64,000 nucleotides of DNA from Piromyces finnis finn (taxonomy: Eukaryota > Fungi > Neocallimastigomycota). Location of the stretch: contig MCFH01000036.1 in assembly GCA_002104945.1 (NCBI GenBank), positions 310,001-374,000 on the forward strand, written 5' to 3'. The notes under the pieces were generated by a model that was not told where the DNA came from, ran no database searches, and worked only from the letters and a program-made list of their open reading frames with translations. The position numbers were made by a program, and so were the translations under genes. Positions 13,028 to 61,750 of the stretch are shown here, piece by piece. Within the stretch, counting starts at the first letter, position 1. Each line of letters opens with the position of its first letter.

Positions 13028-14650
13028 ATGAAATTCTTATCGATTGCATCTTTACTTGTATTATCAATTATAAACGGCATCAATGCTCATACTTATGAGT
13101 CACTTGGTATAAATGCTGTTAAAAAGCAAGAAACAGAAGCATTAATTTCAAAAGAACATACAATTCCAATTATTAATGTTTCAACAAAAGATAATAGTGA
13201 ATTAATTCTTTCAAGAGATAATTACACTGATTGTGTTGTGGATTTCTTTAACGTTGAAAATAAATTCAAATTTAGCGAAAAATCTGCAAAAATTAGAGTA
13301 AGAGGAAACTACAGTGGTTTTTATGGTGATGCTGAACAAATAAAAAATAATACAGTTCCATACAAAATTAAGTTTGATGAAAAGACTAGTTTTTATGGTC
13401 TTCATAACGGTGAAAAATTTAAGAGTTGGACTTTACTTAAGACTTTCGATGGTGTCATTCTTAATGATATTGGTTTAAGAATTGGTCGTCAAATCTTTGG
13501 TAATGAACAATACATTTCTGACTCAAAGTTTGTTAATCTTTATGTTAATGATAAATTCCAAGGTCTTTACGTTCTTTGTGAACAAAATGAAGTTAACGAA
13601 AAAAGAGTTAATATTTCAAAGCCAGAAAAGAATTACAATGGTACTGATATTGGATACTATTTTGAACTTGATCAATACTACTATGAAAAGCAAGGTCAAT
13701 TTTTCCGTTATTTATATGAAGGTGCTACTGTTACAGATTTAAGAGGTAAAGAAAGAACTTTCTTCAAAGCCGAATACACTTTAAAAAGTGACTTCTACTG
13801 TCAAGAACAATTAGACTTTATCGGTCACTTTACTACTAGTATTTTCAAAATTATTTATCTTGCTGTTGAAAAGGGCGAATTCCAAACCTTTGATGAAAAT
13901 TACAATCTTGTTAATTCTACATACACCAATGCTCAAGATACTATCTCTGCTGTAATGGATATAAATACTGTTGTCAATATGTACCTTCTTTACGAAATTG
14001 TTCATGATAATGATGTTGGTGAAGGTAGTTTCTACTTTGCTGCTGATTTTGCTGATAAAAGTAAAACTCCAAAACTTCAAATGGTTTCACCATGGGATTT
14101 TGATTGGATTTTAACTGATGGTCCAAGAAGATACTGGGCTGCTGCTTTTGTTGAAGATTCATTTATCCAAGAATACAGAGATAGATCAAATCCATGGTTC
14201 GTTTTACTTGGTAAGGAAGAATGGTTCCATGAATTAGTTGCAAAGAAATGGGAAGCTGTATCAGATTTAGTTAAAGCCCAAGTTCCTGAACAAAAAGCTT
14301 ATATTGATGAGAATATTGATGAATTTTTAAAGATTGCCAATGTAATTCCAGAAGCAATGCAAAACATTGAAAATGAACATGAATGGCTTTTAAATAGATT
14401 CGAATGGATGGATGAAGCATTTGTTCCAGGTAGAGGTATTTATCCAATTCCAAGTGAAGAAATACCAGCTGCTGAAACTACAACTACTGAAATTGAAATT
14501 CCAACCACTGTTTATTCTACTGTTACTGAAACTTCAACTATCTACATAGATGATGATGATGATGATATTGCTCAAGAAGTAGAAGCAACTGTTGCTGTTA
14601 ATGAAGATGATGATTCTGATTCTGAATATTCTGATGAAGAAGAACAATAA
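13028..14650 (+). CDS. Secreted CotH-family kinase-like protein, copy 1 (intronless; Thr-rich and acidic tail)
   Basis: Signal peptide MKFLSIASLLVLSIINGINA; CotH-like motifs IRVRGNYS, PYKIKFD, FVNLYVNDKFQGLYVLCEQ, GYYFELD, HDNDVGEGSFYF, SPWDFD. Confidence 0.85.
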   Translation: MKFLSIASLLVLSIINGINAHTYESLGINAVKKQETEALISKEHTIPIINVSTKDNSELILSRDNYTDCVVDFFNVENKFKFSEKSAKIRVRGNYSGFYGDAEQIKNNTVPYKIKFDEKTSFYGLHNGEKFKSWTLLKTFDGVILNDIGLRIGRQIFGNEQYISDSKFVNLYVNDKFQGLYVLCEQNEVNEKRVNISKPEKNYNGTDIGYYFELDQYYYEKQGQFFRYLYEGATVTDLRGKERTFFKAEYTLKSDFYCQEQLDFIGHFTTSIFKIIYLAVEKGEFQTFDENYNLVNSTYTNAQDTISAVMDINTVVNMYLLYEIVHDNDVGEGSFYFAADFADKSKTPKLQMVSPWDFDWILTDGPRRYWAAAFVEDSFIQEYRDRSNPWFVLLGKEEWFHELVAKKWEAVSDLVKAQVPEQKAYIDENIDEFLKIANVIPEAMQNIENEHEWLLNRFEWMDEAFVPGRGIYPIPSEEIPAAETTTTEIEIPTTVYSTVTETSTIYIDDDDDDIAQEVEATVAVNEDDDSDSEYSDEEEQ

Positions 14651-16490
14651 ATAAAATAGAATGTGTGAATAAATAAAAAATTTAAAATACTTGATAGTAA
14701 AAAAGAAAAGAAAATAATAATAATAGTAATAAAATTAATAGATAATAATAAAAATAATAGATAATAGTAAAAATAATAGATAATAATAAAAATAATCATA
14801 TATTTTAACAATAATAGAATTAAGATATTAAAAATAAAATAAATTTATTTCTCTCTTAGAAGATGAATATATTAAGTTTCTCTATAAAATAAAATAAAAT
14901 AAAATAAAATTTCTCACTTTATTTATAAGAAAAAAATATATTAATGAAATCCCTTTTTAATAGTCTGGTTGATACCTTGTCTTTTGTTTTTTTTTTAAAT
15001 ATTTGTTTTCTAAAATAAAAACGATAAAAAAAATGTTTTTTTTTTTTTTTTTTCTTTCAATAGTTTATAGTTTTCAAAAAATTTAATTAATGCCTTCGTA
15101 TTAAAATTACAATAAATAGCTATTGAGAAACTGAAAAGTAGAGTTTTTTTTTATAAATTATTTAATTTTTTTTTGGGGGATAAATTATTTCTACTTGAAA
15201 TAAATCAATATTCATTCAATTCAGTCACAAAATTGAAATACAGATCAAAGCTTGAAATTGCTTACAATTGAAATATTAAATAATAACAATAATAAAAATA
15301 ATAATATTTATAAAAATTTAAAATCGACAAAATATATATATATATATATAATATCTTAATCATTGTTTTTTAAAATATATAAATGCATCAATTTAAAATT
15401 AAAAATATTCTGTTCTTAGTAATATTTCTTTTTTATAAAAAAAAATTATTAAAATTAATTCCCTTTTATATTTTATAAAATAAAATAGTAAAATACAAAA
15501 TTAATAATACTATTTTTAAATCAATTTCAAGTTTATGATATTAGTATTACTTTATTTTTACAAAGAACTTTTAATTTTATTACAGTTCAAATTCATAAAT
15601 TTAATAATTTAAATTATTTCTTCTAACTTAAACAAAAGAGTCATTACAAAAATTGTCGTATAAATAAAGAAATGAATGTAAATATTATAAAAGAAATCAT
15701 AATTGAAATTACTAAATAAGCACATAGAAATACAAAATGCATTGTTATTATGATATTATTAAACCCATATAATTAGTAATTCATATTTAATTTATTGAGA
15801 TGAAATATAAAAATTATTACTTATTACTTAATAATGATTATAATTATTTAGTAATATACATAATTATATGTATGTTTTTAGTATATTCGAATTTCATAAA
15901 ATATACTAAAAGATAATATTCATATAAAATATTATTTTTTGTTTTGTATAATTACTATTATAATTATCATTATTAGTATCATGTTTATATATTATTTATT
16001 TAAATATTCACTTTATTCATATGAAATTAATAATTACTATTTATTATCTAATATATAATAATAAATTAATATATACAAAATATTATATATAAAAGAAAGA
16101 TACATTTATTAAGATACATTTATTATTAATACTTTTTAATTATTCATTTAATTTTTTTTTTATATTTTATTTTATCCATTTGTTTTTTATAATATATTAT
16201 TTAAAAGTAATTCTGTATATTAAAAATACATTTTAATATATTGGAATAACTTTAAAAATAAATTAAATTTTTTTAATTAATTTTTTTATAAAAAGAATTT
16301 CATTTTTTCTTTTCCTTCTTTTTTTTTTTTCTTTTTTTTTATTATTTATCTTATTATTTATTATAAAGACTTTTAAATATTTTATTAGTGTAATATCAAT
16401 AAAAAACGATTAAGACAATAACAACAACATTATTATAATAAATTAGAAAGAGATAAAAAAAAGGAAACTTAAAAATTGTAAAATCACAAC

Positions 16491-16775
16491 ATGAAATTTG
16501 ATTATATATTAAACACACTAAGGTTATTGTCATTAACTTTACCATTTGTTAATGGCAAAGCAATAGACTTAAACGAAGATGAATGTGATGGCATTATAAA
16601 ATATTTAGGAAATTTCAACACATATAATAATTTTCTACTTTTTAACGAAAAAGAAGAAATATGCAAAGTTAATGATTCTGGAAAAGTTGACTATTTGTAA
16701 GTTATTATGTTGTATTTTAATTAATAAATATATATATATTATATATATATAATGTATATAAGAGAAAGTGAAATA

Positions 16776-16806
<31 letters not shown>

Positions 16807-19658
16807 AAATGATAACTTTTTTATATAATTAATACATTAATACAGAAATGTTCGTATTAGAGATGGATCGACAGAGGAACAAATTGAAAAACTTTTATCA
16901 TATGATACTATTACTAACTTGTAGGTTATAAATATTACAATATAATTTTATTTATTATTATTTTAAACTCTAATTTTTTTATTAAATACATTATATATCT
17001 AATATATATAATAAATAATAATAAAAATTAGAGAATATAGTATCTATTATGGAGATGTTTATACAAGTTTTTATGGTTATATAAAAGAACCTGAAAAATA
17101 CTTAGGAATATCAACTTCAATTTCTAAATTACAAAATTTAGAATATTTGTAAGATTTTTTTAATATAATTATATTAAATTATATTATATATACGAATATT
17201 AAATTTTTTAAATAAAATCTACTATAGAAATATCAATCATTATGCGACTACTAATGAATGTTCAACGAGTTGTCCTAGATACTACTTAAAGAAAATTGAA
17301 AAGGGTTCTTTAAATAACTTAAATAAATTAAAGACTTTGTAATAAGACTATTAAATATTTATATAAATATCTATTATTATATATTTTATATAAATTACAT
17401 CATATTGATAACTTAAATTGCTATTTATTATTAATCTTTAAATCATAATTATAGAAAATTACATGGAGTTAGAATATCACAAGATAATATTAATGAAATT
17501 TCTCAATCAAAAAATTTAGAAGAATTGTATCTATCATTTTATTATAAAATTCACAATAAATACTTAAAATGCTTTAATTAAAATTTTAAAGCAATATAAT
17601 TAATATTATGTATTTTATAATATAATAGATCTTTTGAAAATTGTTATCTTGAAGATTCTATTGATTATAAACCATTAAAAAATCTTGATAAATTATCTAA
17701 AATGTAAGATATAAGATATTTAAAAATTTAAAGAATTAAACAATATTAAGTAATAATAAATAATAAAGTGATAAATTGTTAACATTATATTAATAATTTA
17801 TTAATAATAATATATTAATTAAATATTATTATTATTATATTTTATAAAATTAGGACTATCGTAGAGAGTATACTTGGATTTGCTTCCTTTGAATATAATA
17901 CTAGTTTTGAATCTATAAATAACTTATTAAATAATATTGATGGTCCATTAAAAGAATTGTAAGTAATGAAATATTAGATAATATAAAAAGTTTAATATCT
18001 GAATATTATAACTATTATATAAAATTAAAATTTAATATAATAAATATTTAATGAATAAAATGTTATTAGATCATTAAGGTCATCAAACCTTTCAGAAATT
18101 GATATTCCTTCAAGTATTGAAAAATTGTAATATTAAATAATTAATGAAGATAATAATTATAAAGAATTAATAAATATATTATATTAATATTATTAATTAT
18201 ACTAATACTGATACTATGTTCAATTTCTTTTAGATATGCTTCATATAATGGAATTAATTTTTCAAACGAAGATTCGATTGATTTAAGAAAATCACATAAA
18301 CTCAAAAATATGTAAAATTTAAAAATTATTATAAATTAACATTTATAAATATATTAACATTTCCATTTATAAATCAATAAAAAATATTTTATAGAGAATT
18401 TAGGTATGATCCATTAATGCTTTCAATATATTCGCATTTGAGTGCAAGATTGGAATTTAAACTACCAACATCCAATAATATAGAGACATTGTAATTATTA
18501 ATTAGTCAAAGTTCAATTAAAACGATTAACCTATATAATTTATCTTATTTTCAATGACTAATACCTAATACTAATTTTATATTTTTATATTATTATTTAA
18601 AATAAACAATTATTATAGAAAACTTAGTAGAGTTGAATTAAGTGATGAACAAATGAAAGAGATTTCATTCTCTTCTAATCTTAAAGAACTGTAATATAAA
18701 ATTATCCTATAAAAATAATACATTTTATTTTAATTAATAATTAATTTTCTAATAAAATATTATATACTACTATGTAATATTTTTTTAGTAATTGCATCAA
18801 TACAGTACTTTATGATATATCAAATAATACCGAACAATCAATAAATCAATTAAAAAATCTTCAATCTTTGTAATAAATATATTTACAAATTATTAAATAA
18901 TTAATCTTTGTATATATAACTGATTCTATAATATAAAAATATTAACTTTTTATAATAATTATTTGTCTTAATATGTCAATTTATCAGGTCAATAAATACA
19001 GAAAATTTACATGGTCCAAAATATACTGATTTTAATTTTAGATTATCAGAGTTAAAAGAATTAAAATCTTTGTAAGTTTAAATAAAAATGAATAAAAAAA
19101 TAAAATATAATCAAATAAAAATATTAAATAATAAATAATGTTAATTAAAAATATTATATTTTAATAATATTAGGGATATGGAAAACTTTATAATTGGAAA
19201 AGATGTTTTAAATGATATTGCTTGTTTACCAAAACTTGATGAACTGTAAAGCATATTTAATATAATAATTAATAACAAATAAATAATAATTTTTTCTATT
19301 CAAATTAATATATATACTAACTATAATTTTTAAATATTAAATATAATTTTTTAAATATTAAATATAATTTTTTAAATATTAAATATAATTTTTTAAATAT
19401 TAAATATAATTTTTTAAATATTAAATATAATTTTTTAAATATTACGTATATTATTAATTATGTTTATAAAATTATAAATAATTCAAAAAAATTATTAATA
19501 GTAATATTCAAAATTCAAAATTATATAAAGATACATCATCAAACGAAGATATTTATTTTGATATTAGCCTTAATGATTTGAAAAAAACATGTTCTTCTAA
19601 TATAACTGATGTTGAATCAACTATCATTGAAACTACTACTACTACCACTACTACTACC

Positions 19659-19700
<42 letters not shown>

Positions 19701-20588
19701 GCTGCTACTACTACTGAAAATAAACCTACTTCTAATTTATCTGATGACAAAACAGAAACAATTATTGTTAATGAAAATAAACCAACTACTACATTATCAA
19801 ATAATAAAAATGAATTAGTTACTACCACTAATACTAATACTAGTACTATTACAACTTCTATTACAACTTCTATTAATACCAATAGTAATACAACTACTAC
19901 TATTAATAAGGCTATTAATACTACTACTTCTGTTATTATACAAACCAAAGTTCCAGAAATCGATTACAATGATAATAGTGATTCTGATGATGAAGTAGAT
20001 GACAATAGTAATATTATTATAAATAATAATAATAATAAAAATGATGAAAATAATCAAAATTCAAATATTGATATTGATGAAGAAGAAAGTGATGTTGATA
20101 TCGATGAAAATACAAAAGATTATCTTCGTCAAATATTTAACTGGTTTTCAGAAGTAATTAATGTACTTGGAATTGGTTCATCTAATTCTAATTTATCCAA
20201 TAATAAAAATGAAATAACTACTATTACTACTGGTGTTACTACTACCCATACTACACCTTCTATCACTACTTTCTCTACTACTTCTACTGATAATAAACCA
20301 ACTTTTACTTCTTCATCCAATACTAAAACTGAAATAACTACTACAACTATTATTATGGCATATCAAACTTCTGAAATTGATAATAATAGTAATAATAATA
20401 ATACTACAAATACAAACAATACAAATAATAATACAAACAATATTCAAAATTTAAACAATGATGGAAATAATAATGTTCAAATTGATAAAAGTATTAAGGA
20501 TTATCTTGATCAATTATTATATTGGTTTTTAGATATTCTTAAAACATTAAATTTAAAATTAAGAAATGTCATTAAACAATTATTTTAA
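16491..20588 (+). CDS. Secreted LRR protein with Thr/Ser/Asn-rich stalk, copy 1. About 795 aa, 15 exons: 16491-16696, 16846-16920, 17032-17148, 17228-17338, 17455-17526, 17629-17703, 17854-17958, 18070-18126, 18234-18311, 18395-18490, 18619-18690, 18789-18869, 18988-19071, 19174-19245, 19502-20588
   Basis: Signal peptide (MKFDYILNTLRLLSLTLPFVNGKA). Thirteen internal exons, all multiples of 3, end in LxxLxxL-type LRR motifs (ISKLQNLEYL, LNNLNKLKTL, LKNLQSL, LSELKELKSL, IACLPKLDEL). All junctions are GT-AG phase 2 and join in frame to the 19578-20588 ORF. Confidence 0.85.
19323..19444. repeat. 21 bp AT minisatellite (ATATAATTTTTTAAATATTAA) x6 in LRR copy 1 intron 14
   Basis: Directly visible. 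Homologous tracts have 11 units at 31040-31262 and 6 units at 36386-36505. Confidence 0.9.
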
Positions 20589-21569
20589 ATATCTTAACAA
20601 TACCAATTTACTTTAATTAAATTGGAAGAAAGGAAAAGAAAATACAACAAATATGAATCGAATTGAATAATAACAATAATAATAATAATAATCAAAAGCA
20701 AAACTAAAACTCTAAAATAATAATTAAAAATCAAATGAAATGAATAATTTAATTCTCAATTTCAAATGAATAGAATAATAATAATTTTTATTATTAAAAA
20801 TTTTTATTATTGAAAATTTTTATTATTGAAAATTTTTAAATTAAATAATAATACAAAAAATTTCAAATATTTCTAAAAATTCAATTATTTCAAGAATACA
20901 AAGTAACATTTTTCGCAAAATATATAATATATATTATGTTTATATATTATAACAATTCGCAAATTAACTACAAATAATATTTAAAAAAAGAAATAATAAT
21001 TAACACTATTACTATATATTTTAAATATATAAGTTATTAAATACTAATATTATTTAATATTTTAAATATTTTATTTTAATATTATAAATATATAATTATT
21101 TTATTATTATTATTATATGATTATTTTATGATTATTTTATGATTATTTTATGATTATTTTATGATTATTATATGATTATTATATATTTTTATTATATTAT
21201 TAAAACTAACTATTTTATATGATTTAAACTTTATAAATTTATTATAAATATGTATATACAACATATACAACATTCATATTTATATTTATTCCTTATTATT
21301 TAATTATTTATATCTATTATATCAATATATCAATATTTATAAAATATTATAAAATATTTTTAAAAAAAAAATATTCTACTTATATTTCTCTTTTTAAAAG
21401 TTACATTAATACTACACCAATATTTTTAATTCTATAGTAACACTCATAATCAAATTTCTAAAAATTTAAATTATTATTATATTAATATAAAATAAATTTA
21501 GATCATATAAAATGTAATTAAAATAAATATTATATATATAAATACATATACTTCATTTATTATCTTTAT

Positions 21570-22980: not shown

Positions 22981-25900
22981 ATGAACAATACCAATTGTAC
23001 TGTACCTACCTTACGACGTGGTCTTCGTTTCTTCGGATCTAACTCCAATAAATCATATCTAATTTTTATCCATGATCTTAGTTCATGGTCAAAACAACGA
23101 CTAATGGAATTTCTTTTAAAGGACATTCAACCTTTCAATGATATTCTTCAATCCCTCACCAAAAAATATTCACAATCACTCGGTATCTATTTCATTCTTA
23201 AAGTCAATGGAAAATGTCCGCTTAAAGCCATGTTACTTATACACTCACTTTCTGAAAAACTCCCAATCTCTAGTAAAATATCTTGGAAATTCATTGATAA
23301 GCTCAAAAACAATAGATCATACAAAAACAAACGATCTATCAAATCTACTACTGGTCCACTCTCTGACGATTTCTATTTTAGTCATCTAAGCTCTAATGCT
23401 TCCTTTTTCAACTTATGTACTTGTTGGAACATCAATGGTTGGAACCCGGAGAAAAAGGACGGTGTTTTATACTTCATCTCTGTTTTCAAACCTGTATGTG
23501 TCTGTCTTCAAGAAGTAGGTAACAGCCAATTCCTCTGTGGTAATGCAATTTCCTCCCCATGCCTACCGAACTATAAACCAGTACACAGACGTGCTAATCC
23601 TAAAGTTCCAGGTATGAGAGGACTTTACATTGGTGTTCATAATTCTTGTTCCTTTACTCCTGAACCTCTTCTATATAAGTACATCATTTCAGTTACAATA
23701 TTGTCATTTTGGAACCAGAGATGTACCATTGGTAATATTTACTTCCCGCAAACTAGATGGCCGGATGCTAGATTAATTGCCTTTGATGAACTTGATAAGT
23801 GGTTAACAACGCATAACAAATTCAACCACCCAGCTATCCTTGTAGGAGACTTTAATATGTCAGCTATTAAAATCAAATCTTATATATCACAACACTTCCC
23901 GGATTGGACTATGGCTGAGTTAACTGGTAATAATTTTACCTGGGAAAAAGGATCTAAATCTTCATGCATTGATCATATTATATACAACAAAGCTATGACA
24001 GAACACATAAACAAATCTTCAGTTTGTGAAGTTTTCCACGATGTTTCTGATCACAAACCGATCCTTGTGTCTTGTAAAAAAGACTCTTCGGATGGTTTCA
24101 AAAAGCCTAAGAAGACCTTTAAGTGGTCAAGTCATATCTGTAACACAAAGTGTTCTGACATTCTTACTAGTAATCGTTTTGCTGTTCTAGCTTCCGAGCT
24201 TGAAGCTAATTGTGATAGCCTTTTGGCTGACGATATGGTTTCAAGATTTTTAGATACTTCCAAAACTATAGGTAAAGAAATAAAAGCCATTGTGCCTGCA
24301 GATTTAAAAGGTCCAGCATTCCATTGCCCTCAATACATCAAAAACTTATCACATGAAAAACACCTGGCTTACAAAAATATTAAGCCCCTTTCAGATTGCG
24401 CTGACATGGAAAATTATCTTAACCAGTTCTCCATATACCAAAATCTATGTAATACCATCAAAAAGGTTAAGAGCAAATTCAGATCCAATCTCTATAAAGC
24501 TAATATTGTTTCTATCGGTAAACATTTTATTGATAAAAGCTTTAGACAAGGTTGGAAAGGCCTTAAAAAACTTGCTAAACCAAGTTATTCGTCCTCCCAT
24601 GTTTCAACTATTAAGGACAAGAATGGCAAGGATTTATTTACTCCTCAAGAACAATTAAAACGTTGGGCTGAACATTATGAAAATCTTGCATCGGATGTTA
24701 CAAATCACAGCTTAAATCGTGGTTACTGGGAAAGAGCCTTCCAATTCAACCATATCAATCAAATAGCATGGGATATAAATGGTCCCATTTCTATTGAGGA
24801 AATTAGAAATGTTGTTCTGTCAATGAAGAATAACAAGGCTCCAGGTCCCGATGGTATCCCAATTGAATTTTTCAAAGCTTTCTTTTGTAACGAAGAACTG
24901 GAGAAAGAACATAAGTCTGCTGGAAATTGTCTTAAATTAATTTTTAATAAAATCTGGAATGGTTCCTTTCCTTTGAAATGGAACTCTGCTTCCATTGTTT
25001 CTATTCCAAAGAAAGGCGATCTTTCAGACTGTAATAATTATCGTGGTATTTCTCTCATCAATGTAGGTCTTAAAATTATTTCAAAAATTGTAACTAATAG
25101 AATTTCAAAGTATGCTCTTTCTCATAATTTTATAAGACCTGAGCAATTTGGTTTTCGCAATAAAGAAGAATGTATTAGCTTATTTATTTCCATTAGAGAA
25201 ATCTGTCAAAGAAGGAAATTTAAAGGAAAAGCCACTTATGTCGCCTTTCTAGACCTTAAAAAAGCATACGACTCAGTTCCTATTTTTAATATCCTTACAA
25301 AGTTATATAAATTAGGTATACGTGGTAAATGTTTTGATTTTCTCAATAATCTCTACTCTACCTCTAAAGCTCGTGCACGTTTCTTGGATATGCTTTCCAA
25401 TGAATTCCCTATAAACCGTGGTGTAAGACAAGGATGTCCTCTTTCTCCTATACTGTTTAACCTCTTTATCAATGATATTTTAAATAAATGTGAAAGGCTT
25501 GGAGTTAGCTTAGGTAATAAACGTTGTTGTGGTGGCCTTTTCGCTGATGACATTGTTTTGATTGCTCCTAGTAAGAAGAACCTTCAAAAGATGCTCAATC
25601 TAGTCCTTGATTGGGCTAATTTAAATGAAATGTCTTTTGGAATAAATAAATGTGCAACTATTGTTGTTAAACCTATCAACTTTAATAGATCCCCTAGTTA
25701 TGTCGACCCAACATTTTACATCGGTATGTACTCGATTCCAAAGGTTTCTTGCTATACTTATCTTGGAATCCCATTCGACGAAGATCTTTCTTTGACTCCT
25801 ATTCTGTCTAATATGTACAAAAAAGTTCAGAATTCTTTATTCTCTTTTAAGAACTTCCTCACCAACAATTGTGTTCCTATTGGCTTAAAAAACATAGTAA

Positions 25901-27231
25901 TTCATTCTTATATTATAAGCAAAGTCTCTTATTATGCTCCTTTGCTTGGTTCCAACAAAAATAGAACTAGAAGAGTCCAATCTCTTATCAATACTGCTGT
26001 TTTATGGAGTGTCAATAGCTTTCACAATAAAAGTTTTAATAACAAAGATTTTGTTTTTGAACGAAATTCATTTATTAGTCTGTATGCTCTTACAAGAGAT
26101 ATGAAGATCCCTACCCTTTCAGGTATTTGTGCTGCGCAACAAGTGAAATGCTTTGTTAAATGGAGAAAATCAAATTGTATAATTAAAGATCTCGTCCGAT
26201 CTATTCCTCCCATGTCTCATTACTCTTGGGCCAAAGAATCTTGTTCACTACATAAGAAGCTTATGAAAATAAATATTAAAAGTACTAAAGATATTAGAGA
26301 ATATTATTGGAATAATAGTAGCCTAAATAATGGAAGTAAAGCCCTCAGATATACTAACAACAAATTCCTTAATTCAAATCGCCTAATGCATATCGGTCTC
26401 AACAAACCTCACTTAAATTTAGGAATTACCTGGATTATTCGTATTCGATGCGGTTATGAAAATACTACCCGAATTGCTATTGCCAGTAATAGAGTTACTC
26501 CTGACTGCCCTCGTGTCTGTCCATGTTGCGGATATGACGAACAATCTTTTTACCATTGGATATTAGAATGTTCTGCATTCTCTGAATACAGAGCTTCTTC
26601 ACTTAGCTTTCTTGACGATCTTTTTACCCTTTTTTACAATAAATATAAGAATCAATTCATCACATACTTACTCCCCGAAACGGAAGTAAGAAAAATAATT
26701 TATAACTATATTTTTACGTTCCTTCTTGGTGGAACTTTAGCTTATGATGAGCTACAAATCGATAAGGCGGAACAAAGACATTTGAATGAACAGCTTTACA
26801 GTTCATCGGGGTTTCATGTTCCATATGTAGAGGGTCTCGCGGCTTTTCTTACTAAAACAATCCCTATCATTAGTAGCTCTATGAAGCTACTTTTTGATAG
26901 GTTTAGTAAGACACCTAACGTAATCAAGAGCGCCGACGTCGTACCGATATGGCAAAGGAACATTTCCAATGTTCCGTACACAGGGTTCAATGTTAGTATT
27001 TCCTCAAATTCGAATGAAAACATTATGAACTCATGGGAGAGTTTAGTGGACACCACACTATCATACCTGATGTTACTTCTTTTTTTTATTTCATTTAATT
27101 TATTAGGTAGGGACCATTCCCACACAGTACAAATTGCAAAGTTCATTGAACTTTTATGCAACTTAAATAATTATTTTATATTATTTTATATTTATATTTT
27201 TATTTATATATATTTTATTATTTTTATTTAA
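22981..27231 (+). CDS. LINE polyprotein: AP-endonuclease, reverse transcriptase, C-terminal CCHC zinc knuckle (1416 aa, uninterrupted)
   Basis: APE motifs WNING, CLQE, GDFN, IDHI, SDH. RT motifs KAPGPDGIP, YRGISL, QFGFR, FLDLKKAYDSV, GVRQGCPLSPILFNLFIND, FADD, YTYLG. Zinc knuckle CPCC...HWILEC. Confidence 0.96.
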   Translation: MNNTNCTVPTLRRGLRFFGSNSNKSYLIFIHDLSSWSKQRLMEFLLKDIQPFNDILQSLTKKYSQSLGIYFILKVNGKCPLKAMLLIHSLSEKLPISSKISWKFIDKLKNNRSYKNKRSIKSTTGPLSDDFYFSHLSSNASFFNLCTCWNINGWNPEKKDGVLYFISVFKPVCVCLQEVGNSQFLCGNAISSPCLPNYKPVHRRANPKVPGMRGLYIGVHNSCSFTPEPLLYKYIISVTILSFWNQRCTIGNIYFPQTRWPDARLIAFDELDKWLTTHNKFNHPAILVGDFNMSAIKIKSYISQHFPDWTMAELTGNNFTWEKGSKSSCIDHIIYNKAMTEHINKSSVCEVFHDVSDHKPILVSCKKDSSDGFKKPKKTFKWSSHICNTKCSDILTSNRFAVLASELEANCDSLLADDMVSRFLDTSKTIGKEIKAIVPADLKGPAFHCPQYIKNLSHEKHLAYKNIKPLSDCADMENYLNQFSIYQNLCNTIKKVKSKFRSNLYKANIVSIGKHFIDKSFRQGWKGLKKLAKPSYSSSHVSTIKDKNGKDLFTPQEQLKRWAEHYENLASDVTNHSLNRGYWERAFQFNHINQIAWDINGPISIEEIRNVVLSMKNNKAPGPDGIPIEFFKAFFCNEELEKEHKSAGNCLKLIFNKIWNGSFPLKWNSASIVSIPKKGDLSDCNNYRGISLINVGLKIISKIVTNRISKYALSHNFIRPEQFGFRNKEECISLFISIREICQRRKFKGKATYVAFLDLKKAYDSVPIFNILTKLYKLGIRGKCFDFLNNLYSTSKARARFLDMLSNEFPINRGVRQGCPLSPILFNLFINDILNKCERLGVSLGNKRCCGGLFADDIVLIAPSKKNLQKMLNLVLDWANLNEMSFGINKCATIVVKPINFNRSPSYVDPTFYIGMYSIPKVSCYTYLGIPFDEDLSLTPILSNMYKKVQNSLFSFKNFLTNNCVPIGLKNIVIHSYIISKVSYYAPLLGSNKNRTRRVQSLINTAVLWSVNSFHNKSFNNKDFVFERNSFISLYALTRDMKIPTLSGICAAQQVKCFVKWRKSNCIIKDLVRSIPPMSHYSWAKESCSLHKKLMKINIKSTKDIREYYWNNSSLNNGSKALRYTNNKFLNSNRLMHIGLNKPHLNLGITWIIRIRCGYENTTRIAIASNRVTPDCPRVCPCCGYDEQSFYHWILECSAFSEYRASSLSFLDDLFTLFYNKYKNQFITYLLPETEVRKIIYNYIFTFLLGGTLAYDELQIDKAEQRHLNEQLYSSSGFHVPYVEGLAAFLTKTIPIISSSMKLLFDRFSKTPNVIKSADVVPIWQRNISNVPYTGFNVSISSNSNENIMNSWESLVDTTLSYLMLLLFFISFNLLGRDHSHTVQIAKFIELLCNLNNYFILFYIYIFIYIYFIIFI

Positions 27232-28660: not shown

Positions 28661-29584
28661 AAAAAAAAAAAAAAGTTGCTAAACATTCTATATATTAATC
28701 ATGAGAATTTGATGAATTGTAAACCTATATAAAATTTTAATATTAATTTTTCCATTTAAATGAATAAAATATATTATCAATGATTTCAGAAATTTAAAAA
28801 AAATATAAAGAAATTATGTTAATAACATTATTTTACATTTAATTGTTTATAAAGATAATAAATGAAGTATATGTATTTATATATAATATTTATTTTAATT
28901 ACATTTTATATGATCTAAATTTATTTTATATTAATATAATAATAATTTAAATTTTTAGAAATTTGATTATGAGTGTTACTATAGAATTAAAAATATTGGT
29001 GTAGTATTAATGTAACTTTTAAAAAGAGAAATATAAGTAGAATATTTTTTAAAAATAAAAATATTTTATAATATTTTTATAAATATTAATATATTGATAT
29101 AATAGATATAAATAATTAAATAATAAGGAATAAATATAAATATGAATGTTGTATATGTTATATATACATATTTATAATAAATTTATAAAGTTTAAATCAT
29201 ATAAAATAGTTAGTTTTAATAATATAATAAAAATATATAAATATATAATAATCATATAATAATCATAAAATAATCATAAAATAATCATAAAATAATCATA
29301 TAATAATAATAATAAAATAATTATATATTTATAATATTAAAATAAAATATTTAAAATATTAAATAATATTAGTATTTAATAACTTATATATTTAAAATAT
29401 ATAGTAATAGTGTTAATTATTATTTCTTTTTTTTTTAAATATTATTTGTAGTTAATTTGCGAATTGTTATAATATATAAACATAATATATATTATATATT
29501 TTGCGAAAAATGTTACTTTGTATTCTTGAAATAATTGAATTTTTAGAAATATTTGAAATTTTTTGTATTATTATTTAATTTAAA

Positions 29585-29685
29585 AATTTTCAATAATAAA
29601 AATTTTCAATAATAAAAATTTTCAATAATAAAAATTTTCAATAATAAAAATTTTCAATAATAAAAATTTTTAATAATAAAAATTA
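29585..29685. repeat. 16 bp minisatellite (CAATAATAAAAATTTT)n downstream of the LRR genes
   Basis: About 5 perfect units here, ~2 in copy 1 (near 20800-20830), ~6 in copy 3 (35281-35410). Confidence 0.85.
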
Positions 29686-29875
29686 TTATTATTCTATTCA
29701 TTTGAAATTGAGAATTAAATTATTCATTTCATTTGATTTTTAATTATTATTTTAGAGTTTTAGTTTTGCTTTTGATTATTATTATTATTGTTATTATACA
29801 ATTCGATTCATATTTGTTGTATTTTCTTTTCCTTTCTTCCAATTTAATTAAAGTAAATTGGTATTGTTAAGATAT

Positions 29876-30790
29876 TTAAAATAATTGTTTAATGACATTT
29901 CTTAATTTTAAATTTAATGTTTTAAGAATATCTAAAAACCAATATAATAATTGATCAAGATAATCCTTAATACTTTTATCAATTTGAACATTATTATTTC
30001 CATCATTGTTTAAATTTTGAATATTGTTTGTATTATTATTTGTATTGTTTGTATTTGTAGTATTATTATTATTACTATTATTATCAATTTCAGAAGTTTG
30101 ATATGCCATAATAATAGTTGTAGTAGTTATTTCAGTTTTAGTATTTGATGAAGAAGTAAAAGTTGGTTTATTATCAGTAGAAGTAGTAGAGAAAGTAGTG
30201 GTAGAAGGTGTAGTATGGGTAGTAGTAACACCAGTAGTAATAGTAGTTATTTCATTTTCATTATTGGATAAATTAGAATTAGATGAACCAATTCCAAGTA
30301 CATTAATTACTTCTGAAAACCAGTTAAATATTTGACGAAGATAATCTTTTGTATTTTCATCGATATCAACATCACTTTCTTCTTCATCAATATCAATATT
30401 TGAATTTTGATTATTTTCATCATTTTTATTATTAATATTTTCATCATTTTTATTATTATTATTATTTATAATAATATTACTATTGTCATCTACTTCATCA
30501 TCAGAATCACTATTATCATTGTAATCGATTTCTGGAACTTTGGTTTGTATAATAACAGAAGTAGTAGTATTAATAGCCTTATTAATAGTAGTAGTTGTAT
30601 TACTATTGGTATTAATAGAAGTTGTAATAGAAGTTGTAATAGTACTAGTATTAGTATTAGTGGTAGTAACTAATTCATTTTTATTATTTGATAATGTAGT
30701 AGTTGGTTTATTTTCATTAACAATAATTGTTTCTGTTTTGTCATCAGATAAATTAGAAGTAGGTTTATTTTCAGTAGTAGTAGCAGTAGC

Positions 30791-30850
<60 letters not shown>

Positions 30851-33800
30851 TTCAATGATAGTTGATTCAACTTCAGTTATATTAGAAGAACATGTTTTTT
30901 TCAAATCATTAAGGCTAATATCAAAATAAATATCTTCGTTTGATGATGTATCTTTATATAATTTTGAATTTTGAATATTACTATTAATAATTTTTTTGAA
31001 TTATTTATAATTTTATAAACATAATTAATAATATACGTAATATTTAAAAAATTATATTTAATATTTAAAAAATTATATTTAATATTTAAAAAATTATATT
31101 TAATATTTAAAAAATTATATTTAATATTTAAAAAATTATATTTAATATTTAAAAAATTATATTTAATATTTAAAAAATTATATTTAATATTTAAAAAATT
31201 ATATTTAATATTTAAAAAATTATATTTAATATTTAAAAAATTATATTTAATATTTAAAAATTATAGTTAGTATATATATTAATTTTAATAGAAAAAACTA
31301 TTATTTATTTGTTATTAATTATTATATTAAATATGCTTTACAGTTCATCAAGTTTTGGTAAACAAGCAATATCATTTAAAACATCTTTTCCAATAATAAA
31401 GTTTTCCATATCCCTAATATTATTAAAATATAATATTTTTAATTAACATTATTTATTATTTAATATTTTTATTTGATTATATTTTATTTTTTTATTCATT
31501 TTTATTTAAACTTACAAAGATTTTAATTCTTTTAACTCTGATAATCTAAAATTAAAATCAGTATATTTTGGACCATGTAAATTTTCTGTATTTATTGACC
31601 TGATAAATTGACATAGTAAGACAAATAATTATTATAAAAAGTTAATATTTTTATATTATAGAATCAGTTATATATACAAAGATTAATTATTTAATAATTT
31701 GTAAATATATTTATTACAAAGATTGAAGATTTTTTAATTGATTTATTGATTGTTCGGTATTGTTCGATATATCATAAAGTACTGTATTGATGCAATTACT
31801 AAAAAAATATTACATAGTAGTATATAATATTTTATTAGAAAATTAATTATTAATTAAAATAAAATGTATTATTTTTATAGGATAATTTTATATTACAGTT
31901 CTTTAAGATTAGAAGAGAATGAAATCTCTTTCATTTGTTCATCACTTAATTCAACTCCACTAAGTTTTCTATAATAATTATTTATTTTAAATAATAATAT
32001 AAAAATATAAAATTAGTATTAGGTATTAGTCATTTAAAATAAGATAAATTATATAGGTTAATCGTTTTAATTGAACTTTGACTAATTAATAATTACAATG
32101 TCTCTATATTATTGGATGTTGGTAGTTTAAATTCCAATCTTGCACTCAAATGCGAATATATTGAAAGCATTAATGGATTATACCTAAATTCTCTATAAAA
32201 TATTTTTTATTGATTTATAAATGGAAATGTTAATATATTTATAAATGTTAATTTATAATAATTTTTAAAATTTACATATTTTTGAGTTTATGTGATTTTC
32301 TTAAATCAATCGAATCTTCGTTTGAAGAATTAATTCCATTAAATGAAGCACACCTAAAACAAAAGAAATTGAACATAGTATCAGTATTAGTATAATTAAT
32401 AATATTAATATAATATATTTATTAATTCTTTATAATTATTATCTTCATTAATTATTTAATATTACAATTTTTCAATACTTGAAGGAATATCAATTTCTGA
32501 AAGGTTTGATGACCTTAATGATCTAATAACATTTTATTCATTAAATATTTATTATATTAAATTTTAATTTTATATAATAGTTATAATATTCAGATATTAA
32601 ACTTTTTATATTATCTAATATTTCATTACTTACAATTCTTTTAATGGACCATCAATATTATTTAATAAGTTATTTATAGATTCAAAACTAGTATTATATT
32701 CAAAGGAAGCAAATCCAAGTATACTCTCTACGATAGTCCTAATTTTATAAAATATAATAATAATAATATTTAATTAATATATTATTATTAATAAATTATT
32801 AATATAATGTTAACAATTTATCACTTTATTATTTATTATTACTTAATATTGTTTAATTCTTTAAATTTTTAAATATCTTATATCTTACATTTTAGATAAT
32901 TTATCAAGATTTTTTAATGGTTTATAATCAATAGAATCTTCAAGATAACAATTTTCAAAAGATCTATTATATTATAAAATACATAATATTAATTATATTG
33001 CTTTAAAATTTTAATTAAAGCATTTTAAGTATTTATTGTGAATTTTATAATAAAATGATAGATACAATTCTTCTAAATTTTTTGATTGAGAAATTTCATT
33101 AATATTATCTTGTGATATTCTAACTCCATGTAATTTTCTATAATTATGATTTAAAGATTAATAATAAATAGCAATTTAAGTTATCAATATGATGTAATTT
33201 ATATAAAATATATAATAATAGATATTTATATAAATATTTAATAGTCTTATTACAAAGTCTTTAATTTATTTAAGTTATTTAAAAAACCCTTTTCAATTTT
33301 CTTTAAGTAGTATCTAGGACAACTCGTTGAACATTCATTAGTAGTCGCATAATGATTGATATTTCTATTGTAGATTTTATTTAAAAAATTTAATATTCGT
33401 ATATATAATATAATTTAATATAATTATATTAAAAAAATCTTACAAATATTCTAAATTTTGTAATTTTAAAATTGAGGGTGATATTCCTAAATATTTTCCA
33501 GGCTTTTCTTCATAATCATATATATCCCAATAATAGACATTATATTCTCTAATTTTTATTATTTATTATATATATTAGATATATATAATGTATTTAATAA
33601 AAAAATTAGAGTTTAAAAAAATAATAAATAAAATTATATTGTAATATTTATAACCTACAAGTTAGTAATAGTATCATATGATAAAAGTTTTTCAATTTGT
33701 TCCTCTGTCGATCCATCTCTAATATGAACATTTCTGTATTAATTATATAAAAAAGTTATCATTTTTATTTATTTATTTATTTATATTTCACTTTCTCTTA

Positions 33801-34068
33801 TATACATTATATATATATAATATATATATATTTATTAATTAAAATACAACATAATAACTTACAAATAGTCAACTTTTCCAGAATCATTAACTTTGCATAT
33901 TTTTTCTTTTTCGTTAAAAAGTAGAAAATCATTATACGTGTTGAAATTTCCTAAATATTTTATAATGTCATCACATTCATCTTCTTTTAAGTCTATTGCT
34001 TTGCCATTAACAAATGGTAAAGTTAATGACAATAACCTTAGTGTGTTTAATATATAATCAAATTTCAT
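29876..34068 (-). CDS. Secreted LRR protein with Thr/Ser/Asn-rich stalk, copy 2 (15 exons, appears intact)
   Basis: All 15 exons of copy 1 are recognisable in inverted orientation with conserved GT-AG sites and no stops seen. Exon 3 is 12 nt shorter and highly diverged. Confidence 0.85.
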
Positions 34069-35607
34069 GTTGTGATTTTACAATTTTTAAGTTTCCTTTT
34101 TTTTTATCTCTTTCTAATTTATTATAATAATGTTGTTGTTATTGTCTTAATCGTTTTTTATTGATATTACACTAATAAAATATTTAAAAGTCTTTATAAT
34201 AAATAATAAGATAAATAATAAAAAAAAAAAAAAAAAAAAAAAAGAAGGAAAAGAAAAAATGAAATTCTTTTTATAAAAAAATAAAAAATTAATTAAAAAA
34301 ATTTAATTTATTTTTAAAGCTACCCAATATATTAAAATGTATTTTTAATATAAAGATTTTTTTGTAATTATATTATTAATTATTGAATATTCTTTTTGAA
34401 TATTCTTTTAAAAGTTTAATATATAAACAATTAATACTAATATATGCAAGATTATTTTAACAATTTATTATTTAATTCTTAATTAACATGAAATTTGATA
34501 ATTGAGAGATTAAAAAATTAATTAAATTCATAATTCATTACTCTGAAATTTTATTTACATTCATTTTTATTTTTGATTTTACTTTTTACTACCAACATTA
34601 ACAAAAGATATAAACAATAATGACAGATACTAAAATATGAAATATTGGAAAGATCAACCTTTCTTGGATTGAAACAATATACGAAAATATAAAATTTTTT
34701 TATTTCAAATAAAATGAACTAATCAAAACTTTGTTGAAAATAATTTTAATACATTTTAAAATTATCATAATAATTTATATAATATGCATTTGTTTCTTTC
34801 AATATAACTGTTTAAAAATAAAAAATTAAACTTTTAAATATATTAATATATCAAATTCAAAAGTAAATTAATAGTTTTTGTTCTGTTATTAAATAAAATA
34901 ATTAAAATATTATACTTAAAAATTATATTGAGAATCTTATAAATATAAAATATAAAAGGATGTTTTATTAATAATATTATTTAACGCATAAATATTTATA
35001 AAAAATAATAAAAAGAAAAATATATACTTATGTATTTATTTTAATTACAATATTACTAAATAGCATTTAAATTTTTAGAAATTTGATAATAAATATCACT
35101 AAATATTTTAAAAAATAGTAATGTAACTATTAAAAAAGTAAAATATTGATATAGTTTTTTTAAAATAAAACATTTTATAATATATATATTATATATTTTG
35201 CGAAAAATGTTACTTTGTATTCTTGAAATAATTGAATTTTTAGAAATATTTGAAATTTTTTGTATTATTATTTAATTTAAAAATTTTCAATAATAAAAAT
35301 TTTCAATAATAAAAATTTTCAATAATAAAAATTTTCAATAATAAAAATTTTCAATAATAAAAATTTTCAATAATAAAAATTTTTAATAATAAAAATTTTT
35401 AATAATAAAAATTATTATTATTCTATTCATTTGAAATTGAGAATTAAATTATTCATTTCATTTGATTTTTAATTATTATTTTAGAGTTTTAGTTTTGCTT
35501 TTGATTATTATTATTATTATTGTTATTATTCAATTCGATTCATATTTGTTGTATTTTCTTTTCCTTTCTTCCAATTTAATTAAAGTAAATTGGTATTGTT
35601 AAGATAT

Positions 35608-36140
35608 TTAAAATAATTGTTTAATGACATTTCTTAATTTTAAATTTAATGTTTTAAGAATATCTAAAAACCAATATATAAATATTGATCAAGATAATCT
35701 TTAACACTTTTATCAATTTGAACATTATTATTTCCATCATTGTTTAAATTTTGAATATTGTTTGTATTATTATTTGTATTGTTTGTATTTGTAGTATTAT
35801 TATTATTACTATTATTATCAATTTCAGAAGTTTGATATGCCATAATAATAGTTGTAGTAGTTATTTCAGTTTTAGTATTTGATGAAGAAGTAAAAGTTGG
35901 TTTATTATCAGTAGAAGTAGTAGAGGAAGTAGTGGTAGAAGGTGTAGTATAAGTAGTAGCAACACCAGTAGTAATAATAGTTATTTCATTTTCATTATTG
36001 GATAAATTAGTGGTAGTAACTAATTCATTTTTATTATTTGATAATGTAGTAGTTGGTTTATTTTCATTAACAATAATTGTTTCTGTTTTGTCATCAGATA
36101 AATTAGAAGTAGGTTTATTTTCAGTAGTAGTAGCAGTAGC

Positions 36141-36197
<57 letters not shown>

Positions 36198-38092
36198 TTC
36201 AATGATAGTTGATTCAACTTCAGTTATATTAGAAGAACATGTTTTTTTCAAATCATTAAGGCTAATATCAAAATAAATATCTTCGTTTGATGATGTATCT
36301 TTATATAATTTTGAATTTTGAATATTACTATTAATAATTTTTTTGAATTATTTATAATTTTATAAACATAATTAATAATATACGTAATATTTAAAAAATT
36401 ATATTTAATATTTAAAAAATTATATTTAATATTTAAAAAATTATATTTAATATTTAAAAAATTATATTTAATATTTAAAAAATTATATTTAATATTTAAA
36501 AATTATAGTTAGTATATATATTAATTTGAATAGAAAAAATTATTATTTATTTGTTATTAATTATTATATTAAATATGCTTTACAGTTCATCAAGTTTTGG
36601 TAAACAAGCAATATCATTTAAAACATCTTTTCCAATTATAAAGTTTTCCATATCCCTAATATTATTAAAATATAATATTTTTAATTAACATTATTTATTA
36701 TTTAATATTTTTATTTGATTATATTTTATTTTTTTATTCATTTTTATTTAAACTTACAAAGATTTTAATTCTTTTAACTCTGATAATCTAAAATTAAAAT
36801 CAGTATATTTTGGACCATGTAAATTTTCTGTATTTATTGACCTGATAAATTGACATATTAAGACAAATAATTATTATAAAAAGTTAATATTTTTATATTA
36901 TAGAATCAGTTATATATACAAAGATTAATTATTTAATAATTTGTAAATATATTTATTACAAAGATTGAAGATTTTTTAATTGATTTATTGATTGTTCGGT
37001 ATTGTTCGATATTTTATAAAATACTGTATTGATGCAATTACTAAAAAAAATTACAAAGTGGTATATAATATTTTATTAGAAAATTAATTATTAATTAAAA
37101 TAAAATGTATTATTTTTATAGGATAATTTTATATTACAGTTCTTTAAGATTAGAAGAGAATGAAATCTCTTTCATTTGTTCATCACTTAATTCAACTCTA
37201 CTAAGTTTTCTATAATAATTGTTTATTTTAAATAATAATATAAAAATATAAAATTAGTATTAGGTATTAGTCATTTAAAATAAGATAAATTATATAGGTT
37301 AATCGTTTTAATTGAACTTTGACTAATTAATAATTACAATGTCTCTATATTATTGGATGTTGGTAGTTTAAATTCCAATCTTGCACTCAAATGCGAATAT
37401 ATTGAAAGCATTAATGGATTATACCTAAATTCTCTATAAAATATTTTTTATTGATTTATAAATGGAAATGTTAATATATTTATAAATGTTAATTTATAAT
37501 AATTTTTAAAATTTACATATTTTTGAGTTTATGTGATTTTCTTAAATCAATCGAATCTTCGTTTGAAAAATTAATTCCATTATATGAAGCATATCTAAAA
37601 GAAATTGAACATAGTATCAGTATTAGTATAATTAATAATATTAATATAATGTATTTATTAATTCTTTATAATTATTATCTTCATTAATTATTTAATATTA
37701 CAATTTTTCAATACTTGAAGGAATATTAATTTCTGAAAGGTCATCAAACCTTTCAGAAATTATTAATGTTCTAAATTTTTTAATTTTAAAATTGAGGGTG
37801 ATATTCCTAAATATTTTCCAGGCTTTTCTTCATATTCATATATATCCCTATAATAGACACTATATTCTCTAATTTTTATTATTTATTATATATATTAGAT
37901 ATATATAATGTATTTAATAAAAAAATTAGAGTTTAAAAAAATAATAAATAAAATTATATTGTAATATTTATAACCTACAAGTTAGTAATAGTATCATATG
38001 ATAAAAGTTTTTCAATTTGTTCCTCTGTCGATCCATCTCTAATATGAACATTTCTGTATTAATGTATTAGTTATATAAAAAAGTTATCATTT

Positions 38093-38127
<35 letters not shown>

Positions 38128-38410
38128 TATTTCACTTTCTCCTTTATATACATTTTATATATATATATTAATTAAAATACAACATAATAAAAAATAACTT
38201 TTAACTTACAAATAATTAACTTTTCTAGAATCATTAACTTTGTATATTTCTTCTTTTTCGTTAAAAAATAGAAAATTATTATATGTGTTGAAATTTCCTA
38301 AATATTTTATAATGTCATCACATTCATCTTCGTTTAAGTCTATTGTTTTGCTATTAACAAATGGTAAAGTTAATGACAATAACCCTAGTGTGTTTAATAT
38401 ATAATCAAAT
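35608..38410 (-). pseudogene. LRR/Thr-rich gene copy 3, pseudogene
   Basis: ATG removed by a deletion near 38410. Exon-1 Cys changed to Tyr. ~0.94 kb deletion from the end of exon 3 into exon 8. 384 bp in-frame deletion in the last exon. 2 nt insertion near 35680 gives a frameshifted end (DYLDQYLYIGF*). Confidence 0.85.
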
Positions 38411-39723
38411 TTTTGTAATTTTTTAATTTAAGTTTCCTTTTTTTTTTATCTCTTTCTAATTTATTATAATAATGCTGCTGTTATTGTCTTAACCATTTTT
38501 TATTGATATTACACTAATAAAATATTTAAAAGTCTTTATAATAAATAATAAGATAAATAATAAAATAAAGAAAAAAAAGAAAAGAATGAAATTCTTTTTA
38601 ATTAAATAAATTTAATTTATTTTTTAAATTATCCAATATATTAAAATGTATTTTTAATATACAGAATTACTTTTAAATAATATATTATAAAAAATAAATG
38701 GATAAACTAAAATATAAAAAAAATATTAAATGTTTAAAAAGGATTCATAATAAAGAAATAAATATTATGAAATATGTATTTATATGTATGATACATAAAT
38801 AACCCTTTCTATTAGAATGAAATATCAACTTTTAGCTAAAATAATTGATTTATAATCTTCTATTATTAACTTTATATATTAAATATTCTATTATTTTTTC
38901 TGAAAAAAATCTTCACACCCTTAAAATATTTTCCTTTTCTTTTTTAAATATAGTTCAAATTTGATAAAAGAATCTTCCCTTTACATACATTATTATATTT
39001 ACTATTAATACTAAAAATATGTATGAAAATAACATGAATAAATAATAATACGATAATAAAAAATATATATTAAAAATAAAAAATAAAAAGTAATATTTAT
39101 AATGATTATATTGTTTATTATGCATATTATTAAACTATTATTATGAAATGGATAATCAATAAGTCAAAATACTAAATCTTTTTATATATTTATATGAATA
39201 TGAATATATATTAATGTATTAATATCAAGTTATATTACTTTATTCAAACAGAAATATTTTATATAAATACAAATATATATATATATATATTACCATATGA
39301 ATTTCCATATTAATTATAGTAAATTGTCATGAAAAAGAAAGAAAAAATATAATTTCAATCTTTTTATTTTATATTATAGAATAAATTTATTATATTTTTT
39401 AAGTATATTACTTAAAAGTTATTCTATAATAATTAATGGAAATGCATTTATTGTATGCATGTATATACGTATTTTTATATATAAATAAATTGTATTTAAA
39501 TAATGTAAACTACTAAATATAATATTTCAAAAACTATAAATTTATTAATTAAAACTTGATATTATATATTATTATCTACTTTTATAAAAAAAAAATTTAA
39601 ATGAATTTATCTCTTTTTTTGTAAAAAAAAAAAAAAAATATTGAAATTAAATAAATTTCAAATTTTTTTATTTTTGAAAAAAAAAAAAAAAAGGTGTTAT
39701 TAATAAGCATTTAAGTTATTAAA

Positions 39724-50391: not shown

Positions 50392-50870
50392 ATTTAAATC
50401 ATAATTATAATAAATAAATATATATATATATGATTTATTGATATTTAATTTTATAATAAAATTATCTAAAAAACATCTACATGATATATCATTAAAATTA
50501 ATTCCATATATCCTAAAACTATCCTACTAATTTTTATACTTCATACATTAAGTTAAATAAATTAAACACATTGACTATAAAATTGTAAAGATAAAAAAAT
50601 AAAAGCATGTTTATCAATAAAATTCGATGTAAATATTTTGTAAAATAATTATAAATACTAAATTTTTAAAGTCTTATTTCCAATATTTAAATATTATTAA
50701 TTAGCATATATTTATTTTCAAATATTATCATTAAAAATATATATTTTTAAAATTTATGAAGAAATAATAATACACATATACAAACATAATTTTAATAACT
50801 TATTATTTTTATTTTTAACTTTAGTTTTATTTTATTTTTTATTTATTTTATTTTTTATATCATTTTTTAA

Positions 50871-61195: not shown

Positions 61196-61750
61196 AAACT
61201 AAATAAAATGATTTTTAATAAAATAAAGATGTTTTTGAAAAATTTTGAAAAAAGTAAGAGTTTAAATACTTTTTTTTTCTCAATTATATAATTATTATTT
61301 TTCAAATGATTATATTAATATTAAATGGTATTTTGTGAAAATAAAATTAAAATAAATATAAGCCACAAACTTTAAATCCTATTTTCTAAATTTTATTTAT
61401 TCAATTGGTTATGTTAATAAATAAAGATGATATTTTTAATGGTTAAAAAAAATGAAAATTATTATGAACCACAAACTTAAAAATTAATACCATTAACCAC
61501 AACATAATTAAATTTAATTTATATTAATGTAATGTATATGTAATAAGATATAATGTAAATTTAATGGTAATGTAAATGTATGATACATATAATTTTTTCA
61601 TTATAACTATAGGTTTTTTTTTTAATTTTTTATTTTTAAATTAAAAGGGTTAAAAAATATTTAAAAAAAATGCAAATTTTAAAGAGTTAATAAAGAAGTT
61701 AGGATGTAAGGATATTTTTATATTATTTAAATTTATAAAAAAAAAACATA

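Follow-up and report, generated by a model that had tools for sequence, protein, structure and literature searches.

We analyzed a 64-kb window of the Piromyces finnis genome (GCA_002104945.1, contig MCFH01000036.1, positions 310001–374000), and all coordinates below count from the first base of that window. By blastn it holds three copies of a gene for a leucine-rich repeat (LRR) protein: two lie in the arms of an inverted repeat, and the third adjoins copy 2 on the minus strand, where the similarity runs from 38754 to 35182. The spacer between the arms opens with the 5′ end of a LINE, which abuts the left arm at 21570. GC content is 12–34% when taken per 2-kb interval, and 15–20% across the LRR gene copies. 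The main features are:

16190–21569, plus strand: left arm of the inverted repeat, with copy 1 (blastn)
28849–34378, minus strand: right arm of the inverted repeat, with copy 2 (blastn)
22981–27231, plus strand: intact LINE ORF2 (endonuclease and reverse transcriptase) in the spacer between the arms
16491–20588, plus strand: copy 1 gene (our own model), 14 short LRR exons and a Thr-rich last exon, ~794 codons
29876–34068, minus strand: copy 2 gene, with exons 1–12 represented by ORX46208.1 (373 aa) and the Thr-rich part by a separate 390-aa model
35182–38754, minus strand: copy 3 pseudogene, with no ATG, a ~0.94 kb deletion and stops past the deletion junction

The LRR cluster is flanked by two CotH-family genes, at 13028–14650 (plus strand, 540 aa) and 44751–46376 (plus strand, 541 aa), whose DNA is 76% identical along the ~1.2 kb that aligns, and HAD-type hydrolase genes also lie on either side. 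The occurrence of both kinds of gene on both sides suggests an older, larger duplication. A tandem array occupies 50850–61200, with 36 units of ~282–289 bp each, mostly 95–100% identical. Repeat units also vary within the LRR gene itself: relative to copy 1, copy 2 carries insertions of 105 nt in intron 14, 24 nt in the Thr-rich exon and 48 nt 3′ of the stop (copy-1 coordinates 19368, 20029 and 20796), and minisatellite changes between these two copies are far more numerous than point changes.

The 14 short exons are all of phase 2-2 and each encodes one irregular leucine-rich repeat, with exon 1 opening on an N-terminal segment that resembles a signal peptide. The Thr-rich last exon of copy 1 starts at 19502, and its join to the LRR part is predicted. 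Our exon chain keeps a single open frame via exons 13 and 14 into the last exon, whereas the public copy 2 model stops after exon 12 (19245–19502). Our chain and that model also disagree on the exon-2 acceptor, which the public model places 15 nt downstream of ours (16846/16861). For copy 1, public annotation consists only of a 216-aa fragment model at 17702–19249, so that exons 1–5 have no public gene model.

The product is an uncharacterized secreted LRR protein of P. finnis. ORX46208.1 carries the name 'RNI-like' in UniRef, and an AlphaFold2 model of the copy 2 protein (pTM 0.75, mean pLDDT 70.6) shows the regular alternation of strand and helix of an LRR solenoid. A Foldseek search with this model returns internalins, Roco LRR, SDS22 and LRRC8 at probability 1.0, with E down to 3e-8, and the predicted fold is that of an LRR solenoid. 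The repeats are irregular and fall below the Pfam LRR threshold: a Pfam search of the copy 2 protein gave no family at E ≤ 0.01, LRR profiles included, though homologs 30% identical to it carry PF13855, PF12799 and PF23598. The tail is Thr-rich and the N-terminal exon is without close relatives, with exon 1 matching only copy 2's own cluster among 1.84 billion cluster representatives.

We also looked for copy 1 in sequence data that do not depend on the assembly. Of the words sampled from 16450–17950, a share of 0.40 occurs in three RNA-like runs that come from two or more other studies. The expected share is 0.37–0.40 if copy 1 mRNA is present and 0.22–0.24 if copies 2 and 3 alone are expressed, which argues that copy-1-specific exon sequence exists outside the assembly. 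This argument is indirect and works at the level of the gene: leaving out exon 3 lowers the expected share only to 0.34, and word shares alone do not resolve that exon. A DNA run holds 0.82 of the words, compared with at most 0.73 if the copy-1-specific words were absent. When an independent assembly was sought through the unique upstream CotH ORF (13028–14650), only the NCBI record matched.

The three copies differ most sharply in exon 3, for which the relevant features are:

17032–17148, plus strand: exon 3 of copy 1, 117 nt, phase 2-2, acceptor TAG, donor GTAAG, open frame
33444–33548, minus strand: exon 3 of copy 2, 105 nt, matching ORX46208.1 residues 89–124
37766–37868, minus strand: exon 3 of copy 3, truncated, with its 3′ end and donor site lost at the deletion junction
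17040–17125, plus strand: divergent patch between copies 1 and 2, with 19 substitutions and a 12-nt in-frame indel

Every difference between copies 1 and 2 in this exon falls within the 86 bases from 17040 to 17125, leaving 8 identical nt at the 5′ edge and 23 at the 3′ edge. The flanks are almost unchanged. The two copies are separated in intron 2 by a single substitution and two short indels, in intron 3 by one substitution, and from 17309 to 18226 by nothing at all. When the 13 introns are pooled, 6 of 1431 aligned sites differ (0.42%), compared with 19 of 74 in the patch (26%; Fisher p = 2e-21). The patch replaces 11 amino acids and adds or removes four, yet both versions have an intact frame, intact splice sites and, at the 3′ end of the exon, an intact LRR consensus. 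At two sites the three copies carry three different residues: G/W/R (codons GGA/TGG/AGG) and G/D/E (GGT/GAT/GAA). Much of this had been described in a first-pass annotation of the same DNA, made from the letters alone. Our alignment and list of differences bear out its three copies, exon coordinates and peptides, its approximately 11 replacements with a 4-aa indel, its near-identical flanking introns and its G/W/R site. The statement that exon 3 has diverged far more than the introns likewise holds on formal alignment.

In the AlphaFold2 model of copy 2, exon 3 spans a strand (residues 88–95), a low-confidence loop (96–107) and a helix (113–117), and 7 of the 11 replacements together with the 4-aa indel fall in the loop. 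The patch is thus predicted to encode the end of a β-strand and a loop-out of the LRR solenoid. Among gut-fungus homologs of 24–31% identity, the same loop is the most variable in both length and sequence, between conserved flanks. It is plausible that so Tyr-rich a composition would suit a binding loop.

The first-pass annotation had counted only about one synonymous change in exon 3, and had offered strong diversifying selection as one of two explanations. One codon is indeed purely synonymous, but four further third-position changes lie within multiply changed codons. By the Nei–Gojobori method there are 4.5 synonymous differences over 18 sites and 11.5 nonsynonymous differences over 81 sites, i.e., pS = 0.25, pN = 0.14 and pN/pS ≈ 0.6, so the earlier count does not survive, and the lesson is that tallying purely synonymous codons alone overstated the case for selection. 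For the rest of the gene the corresponding counts are 4 over 222 and 11 over 924. In a test of the type used for plant R genes, dN was not significantly above dS either in exon 3 or in the rest of the gene.

The silent changes are also the most informative about the age of the patch, whose silent sites are ~60 times more diverged than the introns. It contains at least four silent-type third-position changes, where approximately 0.1–0.25 are expected at the intron rate or at a composition-corrected rate; the excess has p = 3e-6 against the raw intron rate and approximately p = 1e-4 by a rough Poisson calculation that uses the composition-corrected rates. Amino-acid selection does not raise silent divergence and so cannot account for the pS of the patch. 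Taken together, this argues that the patch goes back to a much older split than its flanks.

Base composition has to be taken into account before exons are compared with introns. Outside exon 3, 15 of 1146 exon sites differ between copies 1 and 2 compared with 6 of 1431 intron sites, a raw excess of three times (p = 0.015). This excess arises because the exons hold more G/C (25% of sites, compared with 10% in introns), and sites holding G/C are ~20 times more prone to change than A/T-only sites (16491–19245 against 34068–31300). Taken class by class, 4.8% of exon sites and 2.1% of intron sites differ where at least one copy has G/C (p = 0.2), and 0.22% and 0.23% where there is only A/T. Selection outside exon 3 was rejected on this ground, as the excess disappears under the composition control. 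The patch behaves differently: 50% of its G/C-containing sites differ, compared with 4.8% in other exons, as do 4% of its A/T-only sites, compared with 0.2%, which makes exon 3 a 10- to 18-fold outlier in both classes. The strong mutation bias at G/C sites distorts any exon–intron comparison in this genome, and such comparisons need to be corrected for it.

To describe how the copies are related along the locus, each variable site of the 5.4-kb repeat was put into a class according to the copy that differs from the other two, and a runs test was applied. The classes form 31 runs where 60.7 are expected (p < 1e-5), and leaving out exon 3 does not lift p above 1e-5. This clustering marks the locus as a gene-conversion (recombination) mosaic. 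The partners change from one stretch to the next: 16119–16250 unites copies 1 and 3, and 16250–16761 unites copies 1 and 2, with copy 3 ~5% diverged there. Exon 2 and intron 2 are almost the same in all three copies, whereas in exon 3 copy 1 is the outlier to a pair formed by copies 2 and 3. Exon 3 also does not hold the only patch:

32327–32365 (copy-1 coordinates 18227–18260), minus strand: second patch, unique to copy 2, crossing the border of intron 8 and exon 9

Within 34 bp, the second patch combines four substitutions with 5 nt inserted into the acceptor tract; three of the substitutions replace amino acids (Y/C, Y/F and F/S). Since this patch crosses an intron–exon border, patchy exchange is general at this locus, and neither specific to exon 3 nor confined to exons. 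The two explanations of the first-pass annotation have thus fared differently. Diversifying selection draws no support from a pN/pS of ~0.6, while conversion is upheld in kind, both by the mosaic (p < 1e-5) and by the second patch in copy 2. The fuller wording, exon-confined conversion from another paralog, stands for the conversion but not for the confinement to an exon, and no donor was found in the window or among the public proteins and metagenomes searched.

Copy 3 adds a third version of exon 3, though a damaged one. Its deletion starts at the end of exon 3 and stops inside exon 8, and its exon 3 is of the copy 2 type with four differences. Because copy 3 is a pseudogene, its replacements are uninformative on selection, and because it shares the exon-3 type of its neighbor, it was not the source of the patch in copy 1. 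The deletion junction holds a 28-nt near-palindrome with 10-nt arms and an 8-nt center (37731–37758, minus strand), suggesting that a hairpin or a template switch gave rise to the deletion. The start codon has been lost as well (38400–38420, minus strand).

The copies can also indicate which type of exon 3 came first. Copies 2 and 3 differ there by 4.3% (4 of 93 coding sites compared), which is similar to the upstream divergence of copy 3, where 30 sites in ~510 bp (16250–16761) are unique to it. By this comparison the copy 2 type looks ancestral for the cluster and the copy 1 type derived, but the same topology also fits an old split between copy 1 and copies 2 and 3 followed by homogenization of the flanks.

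The explanation we consider most likely, with a probability of roughly 45%, is that a diverged segment was imported into copy 1 from a relative outside the window. The three LRR copies would evolve in concert through gene conversion in short tracts of ~100–500 bp, which would keep the introns and most exons 99–100% identical. Copies 1 and 2 would have separated first, and at a later time a short conversion tract, or a tract of templated repair, would have written the diverged loop-coding segment into copy 1, the source being the relative outside the window. We infer the direction of the transfer (into copy 1), the outside donor and any consequence for ligand binding.

The search for a donor covered several kinds of data. 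Within the 64-kb window, tblastn with the copy-1 exon-3 peptide and blastn-short with the patch returned only copies 2 and 3, the remaining matches being chance words of at most 13 nt; for the exon-9 patch of copy 2 the window likewise contained no donor and other matches were chance words of at most 13 nt. The exon-1 ORF had no match in a word index of 5.8 billion proteins, and the copy 2 protein found only itself among public proteins, with the next best at 30% identity. A search with its residues 66–165, aimed at transcript fragments, gave no match, and neither did the JGI metagenomes, whether searched by protein or with a degenerate DNA pattern for the copy-1 loop. There is also a mechanistic argument against import: the 8 and 23 nt of identical exon would be little homology for classical recombination with a donor whose introns are unrelated. 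The donor would then need similar introns, which shifts the puzzle from copy 1 to the donor.

The closest competitor, possible but in our view less probable, is that the patch is an old dimorphism that was never erased, a 'peak of divergence' in old duplicates whose sequence conversion has homogenized everywhere else. Two routes could lead there. Either conversion of the patch was selected against, the two loops having different jobs, or 26% divergence with an indel blocks heteroduplex formation, such that tracts end at the edges of the patch. A similar pattern is known for exon 5 of the red and green opsins, where a peak of divergence lies between homogenized introns (Teshima & Innan 2008, reviewed in PMC3924837). 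The elevated pS of the patch and the mosaic fit retention as well as they fit import. In addition, the patch has sharp edges, the copies may really have been duplicated in the order that exon 3 gives, ((2,3),1), two sites have a different residue in each copy, and the loop is variable across the family. The difficulty is that an old inverted duplication must have been held 99.6% identical over 5.4 kb until dS in the patch reached ~0.3. Selection to keep two loops apart finds little in the substitutions either, whose numbers are small: replacement is not in excess over silent change, the composition control leaves no exon excess outside exon 3 as an independent sign of selection, and the decayed copy 3 is of no help on this point. 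Import is slightly favored over retention, and both fit the data.

A third explanation is that the loop segment of copy 1 evolved rapidly in place after the duplication, under positive diversifying selection or owing to local hypermutation or error-prone repair. Eleven replacements and a 4-aa indel in a Tyr-rich loop adjoining an LRR strand, the three-state sites G/W/R and G/D/E, and the hypervariability of the loop among homologs are all what such a process might produce. Nevertheless we find it unlikely. A pN/pS of ~0.6 is not above 1, and positive selection would not give silent sites with ~60 times the divergence of the introns. The segment would have to acquire 19 point changes and a 12-nt indel while the introns gained 0.4%. 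The spectrum is also mixed, with 13 transitions and 5–6 transversions, and with A-to-G and G-to-A changes both present.

Two specific mutagenic systems were considered as well. Mutagenesis like that of diversity-generating retroelements (DGRs) was rejected: A occupies only 7 of the 19 differing sites per copy, the changes run in both directions, and the reverse transcriptase nearby is an ordinary LINE ORF2. RIP-like mutagenesis was rejected because the spectrum is not C-to-T.

Finally, it is very improbable that the patch is a spurious product of assembly or polishing, or that the identity of the flanks was inflated by cross-mapped reads during polishing: this is a long-read assembly of a genome with 16–20% GC and three near-identical copies, in which many copy differences are slips in repeat length and the first five exons of copy 1 are unannotated, but an artefact would not yield a 12-nt in-frame indel and 19 substitutions that preserve frame, splice sites and LRR consensus, cross-mapping erases patches and does not create them, and the word shares of the three RNA-like runs and of the DNA run fit the presence of copy-1-specific words.

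The most economical explanation for the locus is thus a known process, the concerted evolution of duplicates with one tract of older ancestry. The patch is a known footprint of the swapping of short pieces of DNA between gene copies, and not proof of diversifying selection. The numbers place it among paralogs with homogenized noncoding flanks (introns at 0.42%) and a local peak of divergence (26% in the patch), and the likeness to opsin exon 5 is close: in both cases the duplicates are neighbors, conversion keeps their introns near-identical, and a sharp peak of divergence lies within one exon. The differences are as instructive. The opsin peak is tied to two functional residues and confirmed by orthologs, whereas for the peak here the protein and metagenome searches retrieved no ortholog; the patch is far more diverged (26% and an indel); and it shows no surplus of replacements.

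Patchwork sequence exchange is also seen in clustered LRR recognition genes of plants, such as Cf-4/9 and the chimeras of RGC2 type. The P. finnis locus resembles them in having tandem or inverted LRR paralogs, a mosaic of short tracts, and variation near the β-strand and loop. In the plant clusters, dN exceeds dS at residues exposed to solvent, and many paralogs are available as donors. The P. finnis cluster has just three copies, including a pseudogene, its dN/dS is below 1, and the organism is a gut fungus. In the immunoglobulin genes of the chicken, conversion from pseudo-V genes provides templated diversification from pseudogenes. The likeness is that the copy 3 pseudogene lies 1.1 kb from a functional copy and that short conversion tracts are evident, but nothing at this locus points to a programmed process.

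Anaerobic gut fungi have very large and unstudied sets of LRR surface-protein genes with one repeat per exon. The exon-3 loop might be a specificity-determining element of a fungal surface receptor, with its variants selectively kept in copies that are otherwise homogenized and moved between family members by short conversion tracts; we think this unlikely, but if true it would be a small-scale germline analog of cassette-based receptor diversification, in an early-diverging fungus. The locus gives numbers for short-tract exchange between LRR gene copies of a gut fungus, and it illustrates how sharply copies that are otherwise identical can diverge in a single loop beside a repeat strand. Should the two versions of the loop bind different partners, they would form a natural pair for finding what these proteins recognize.
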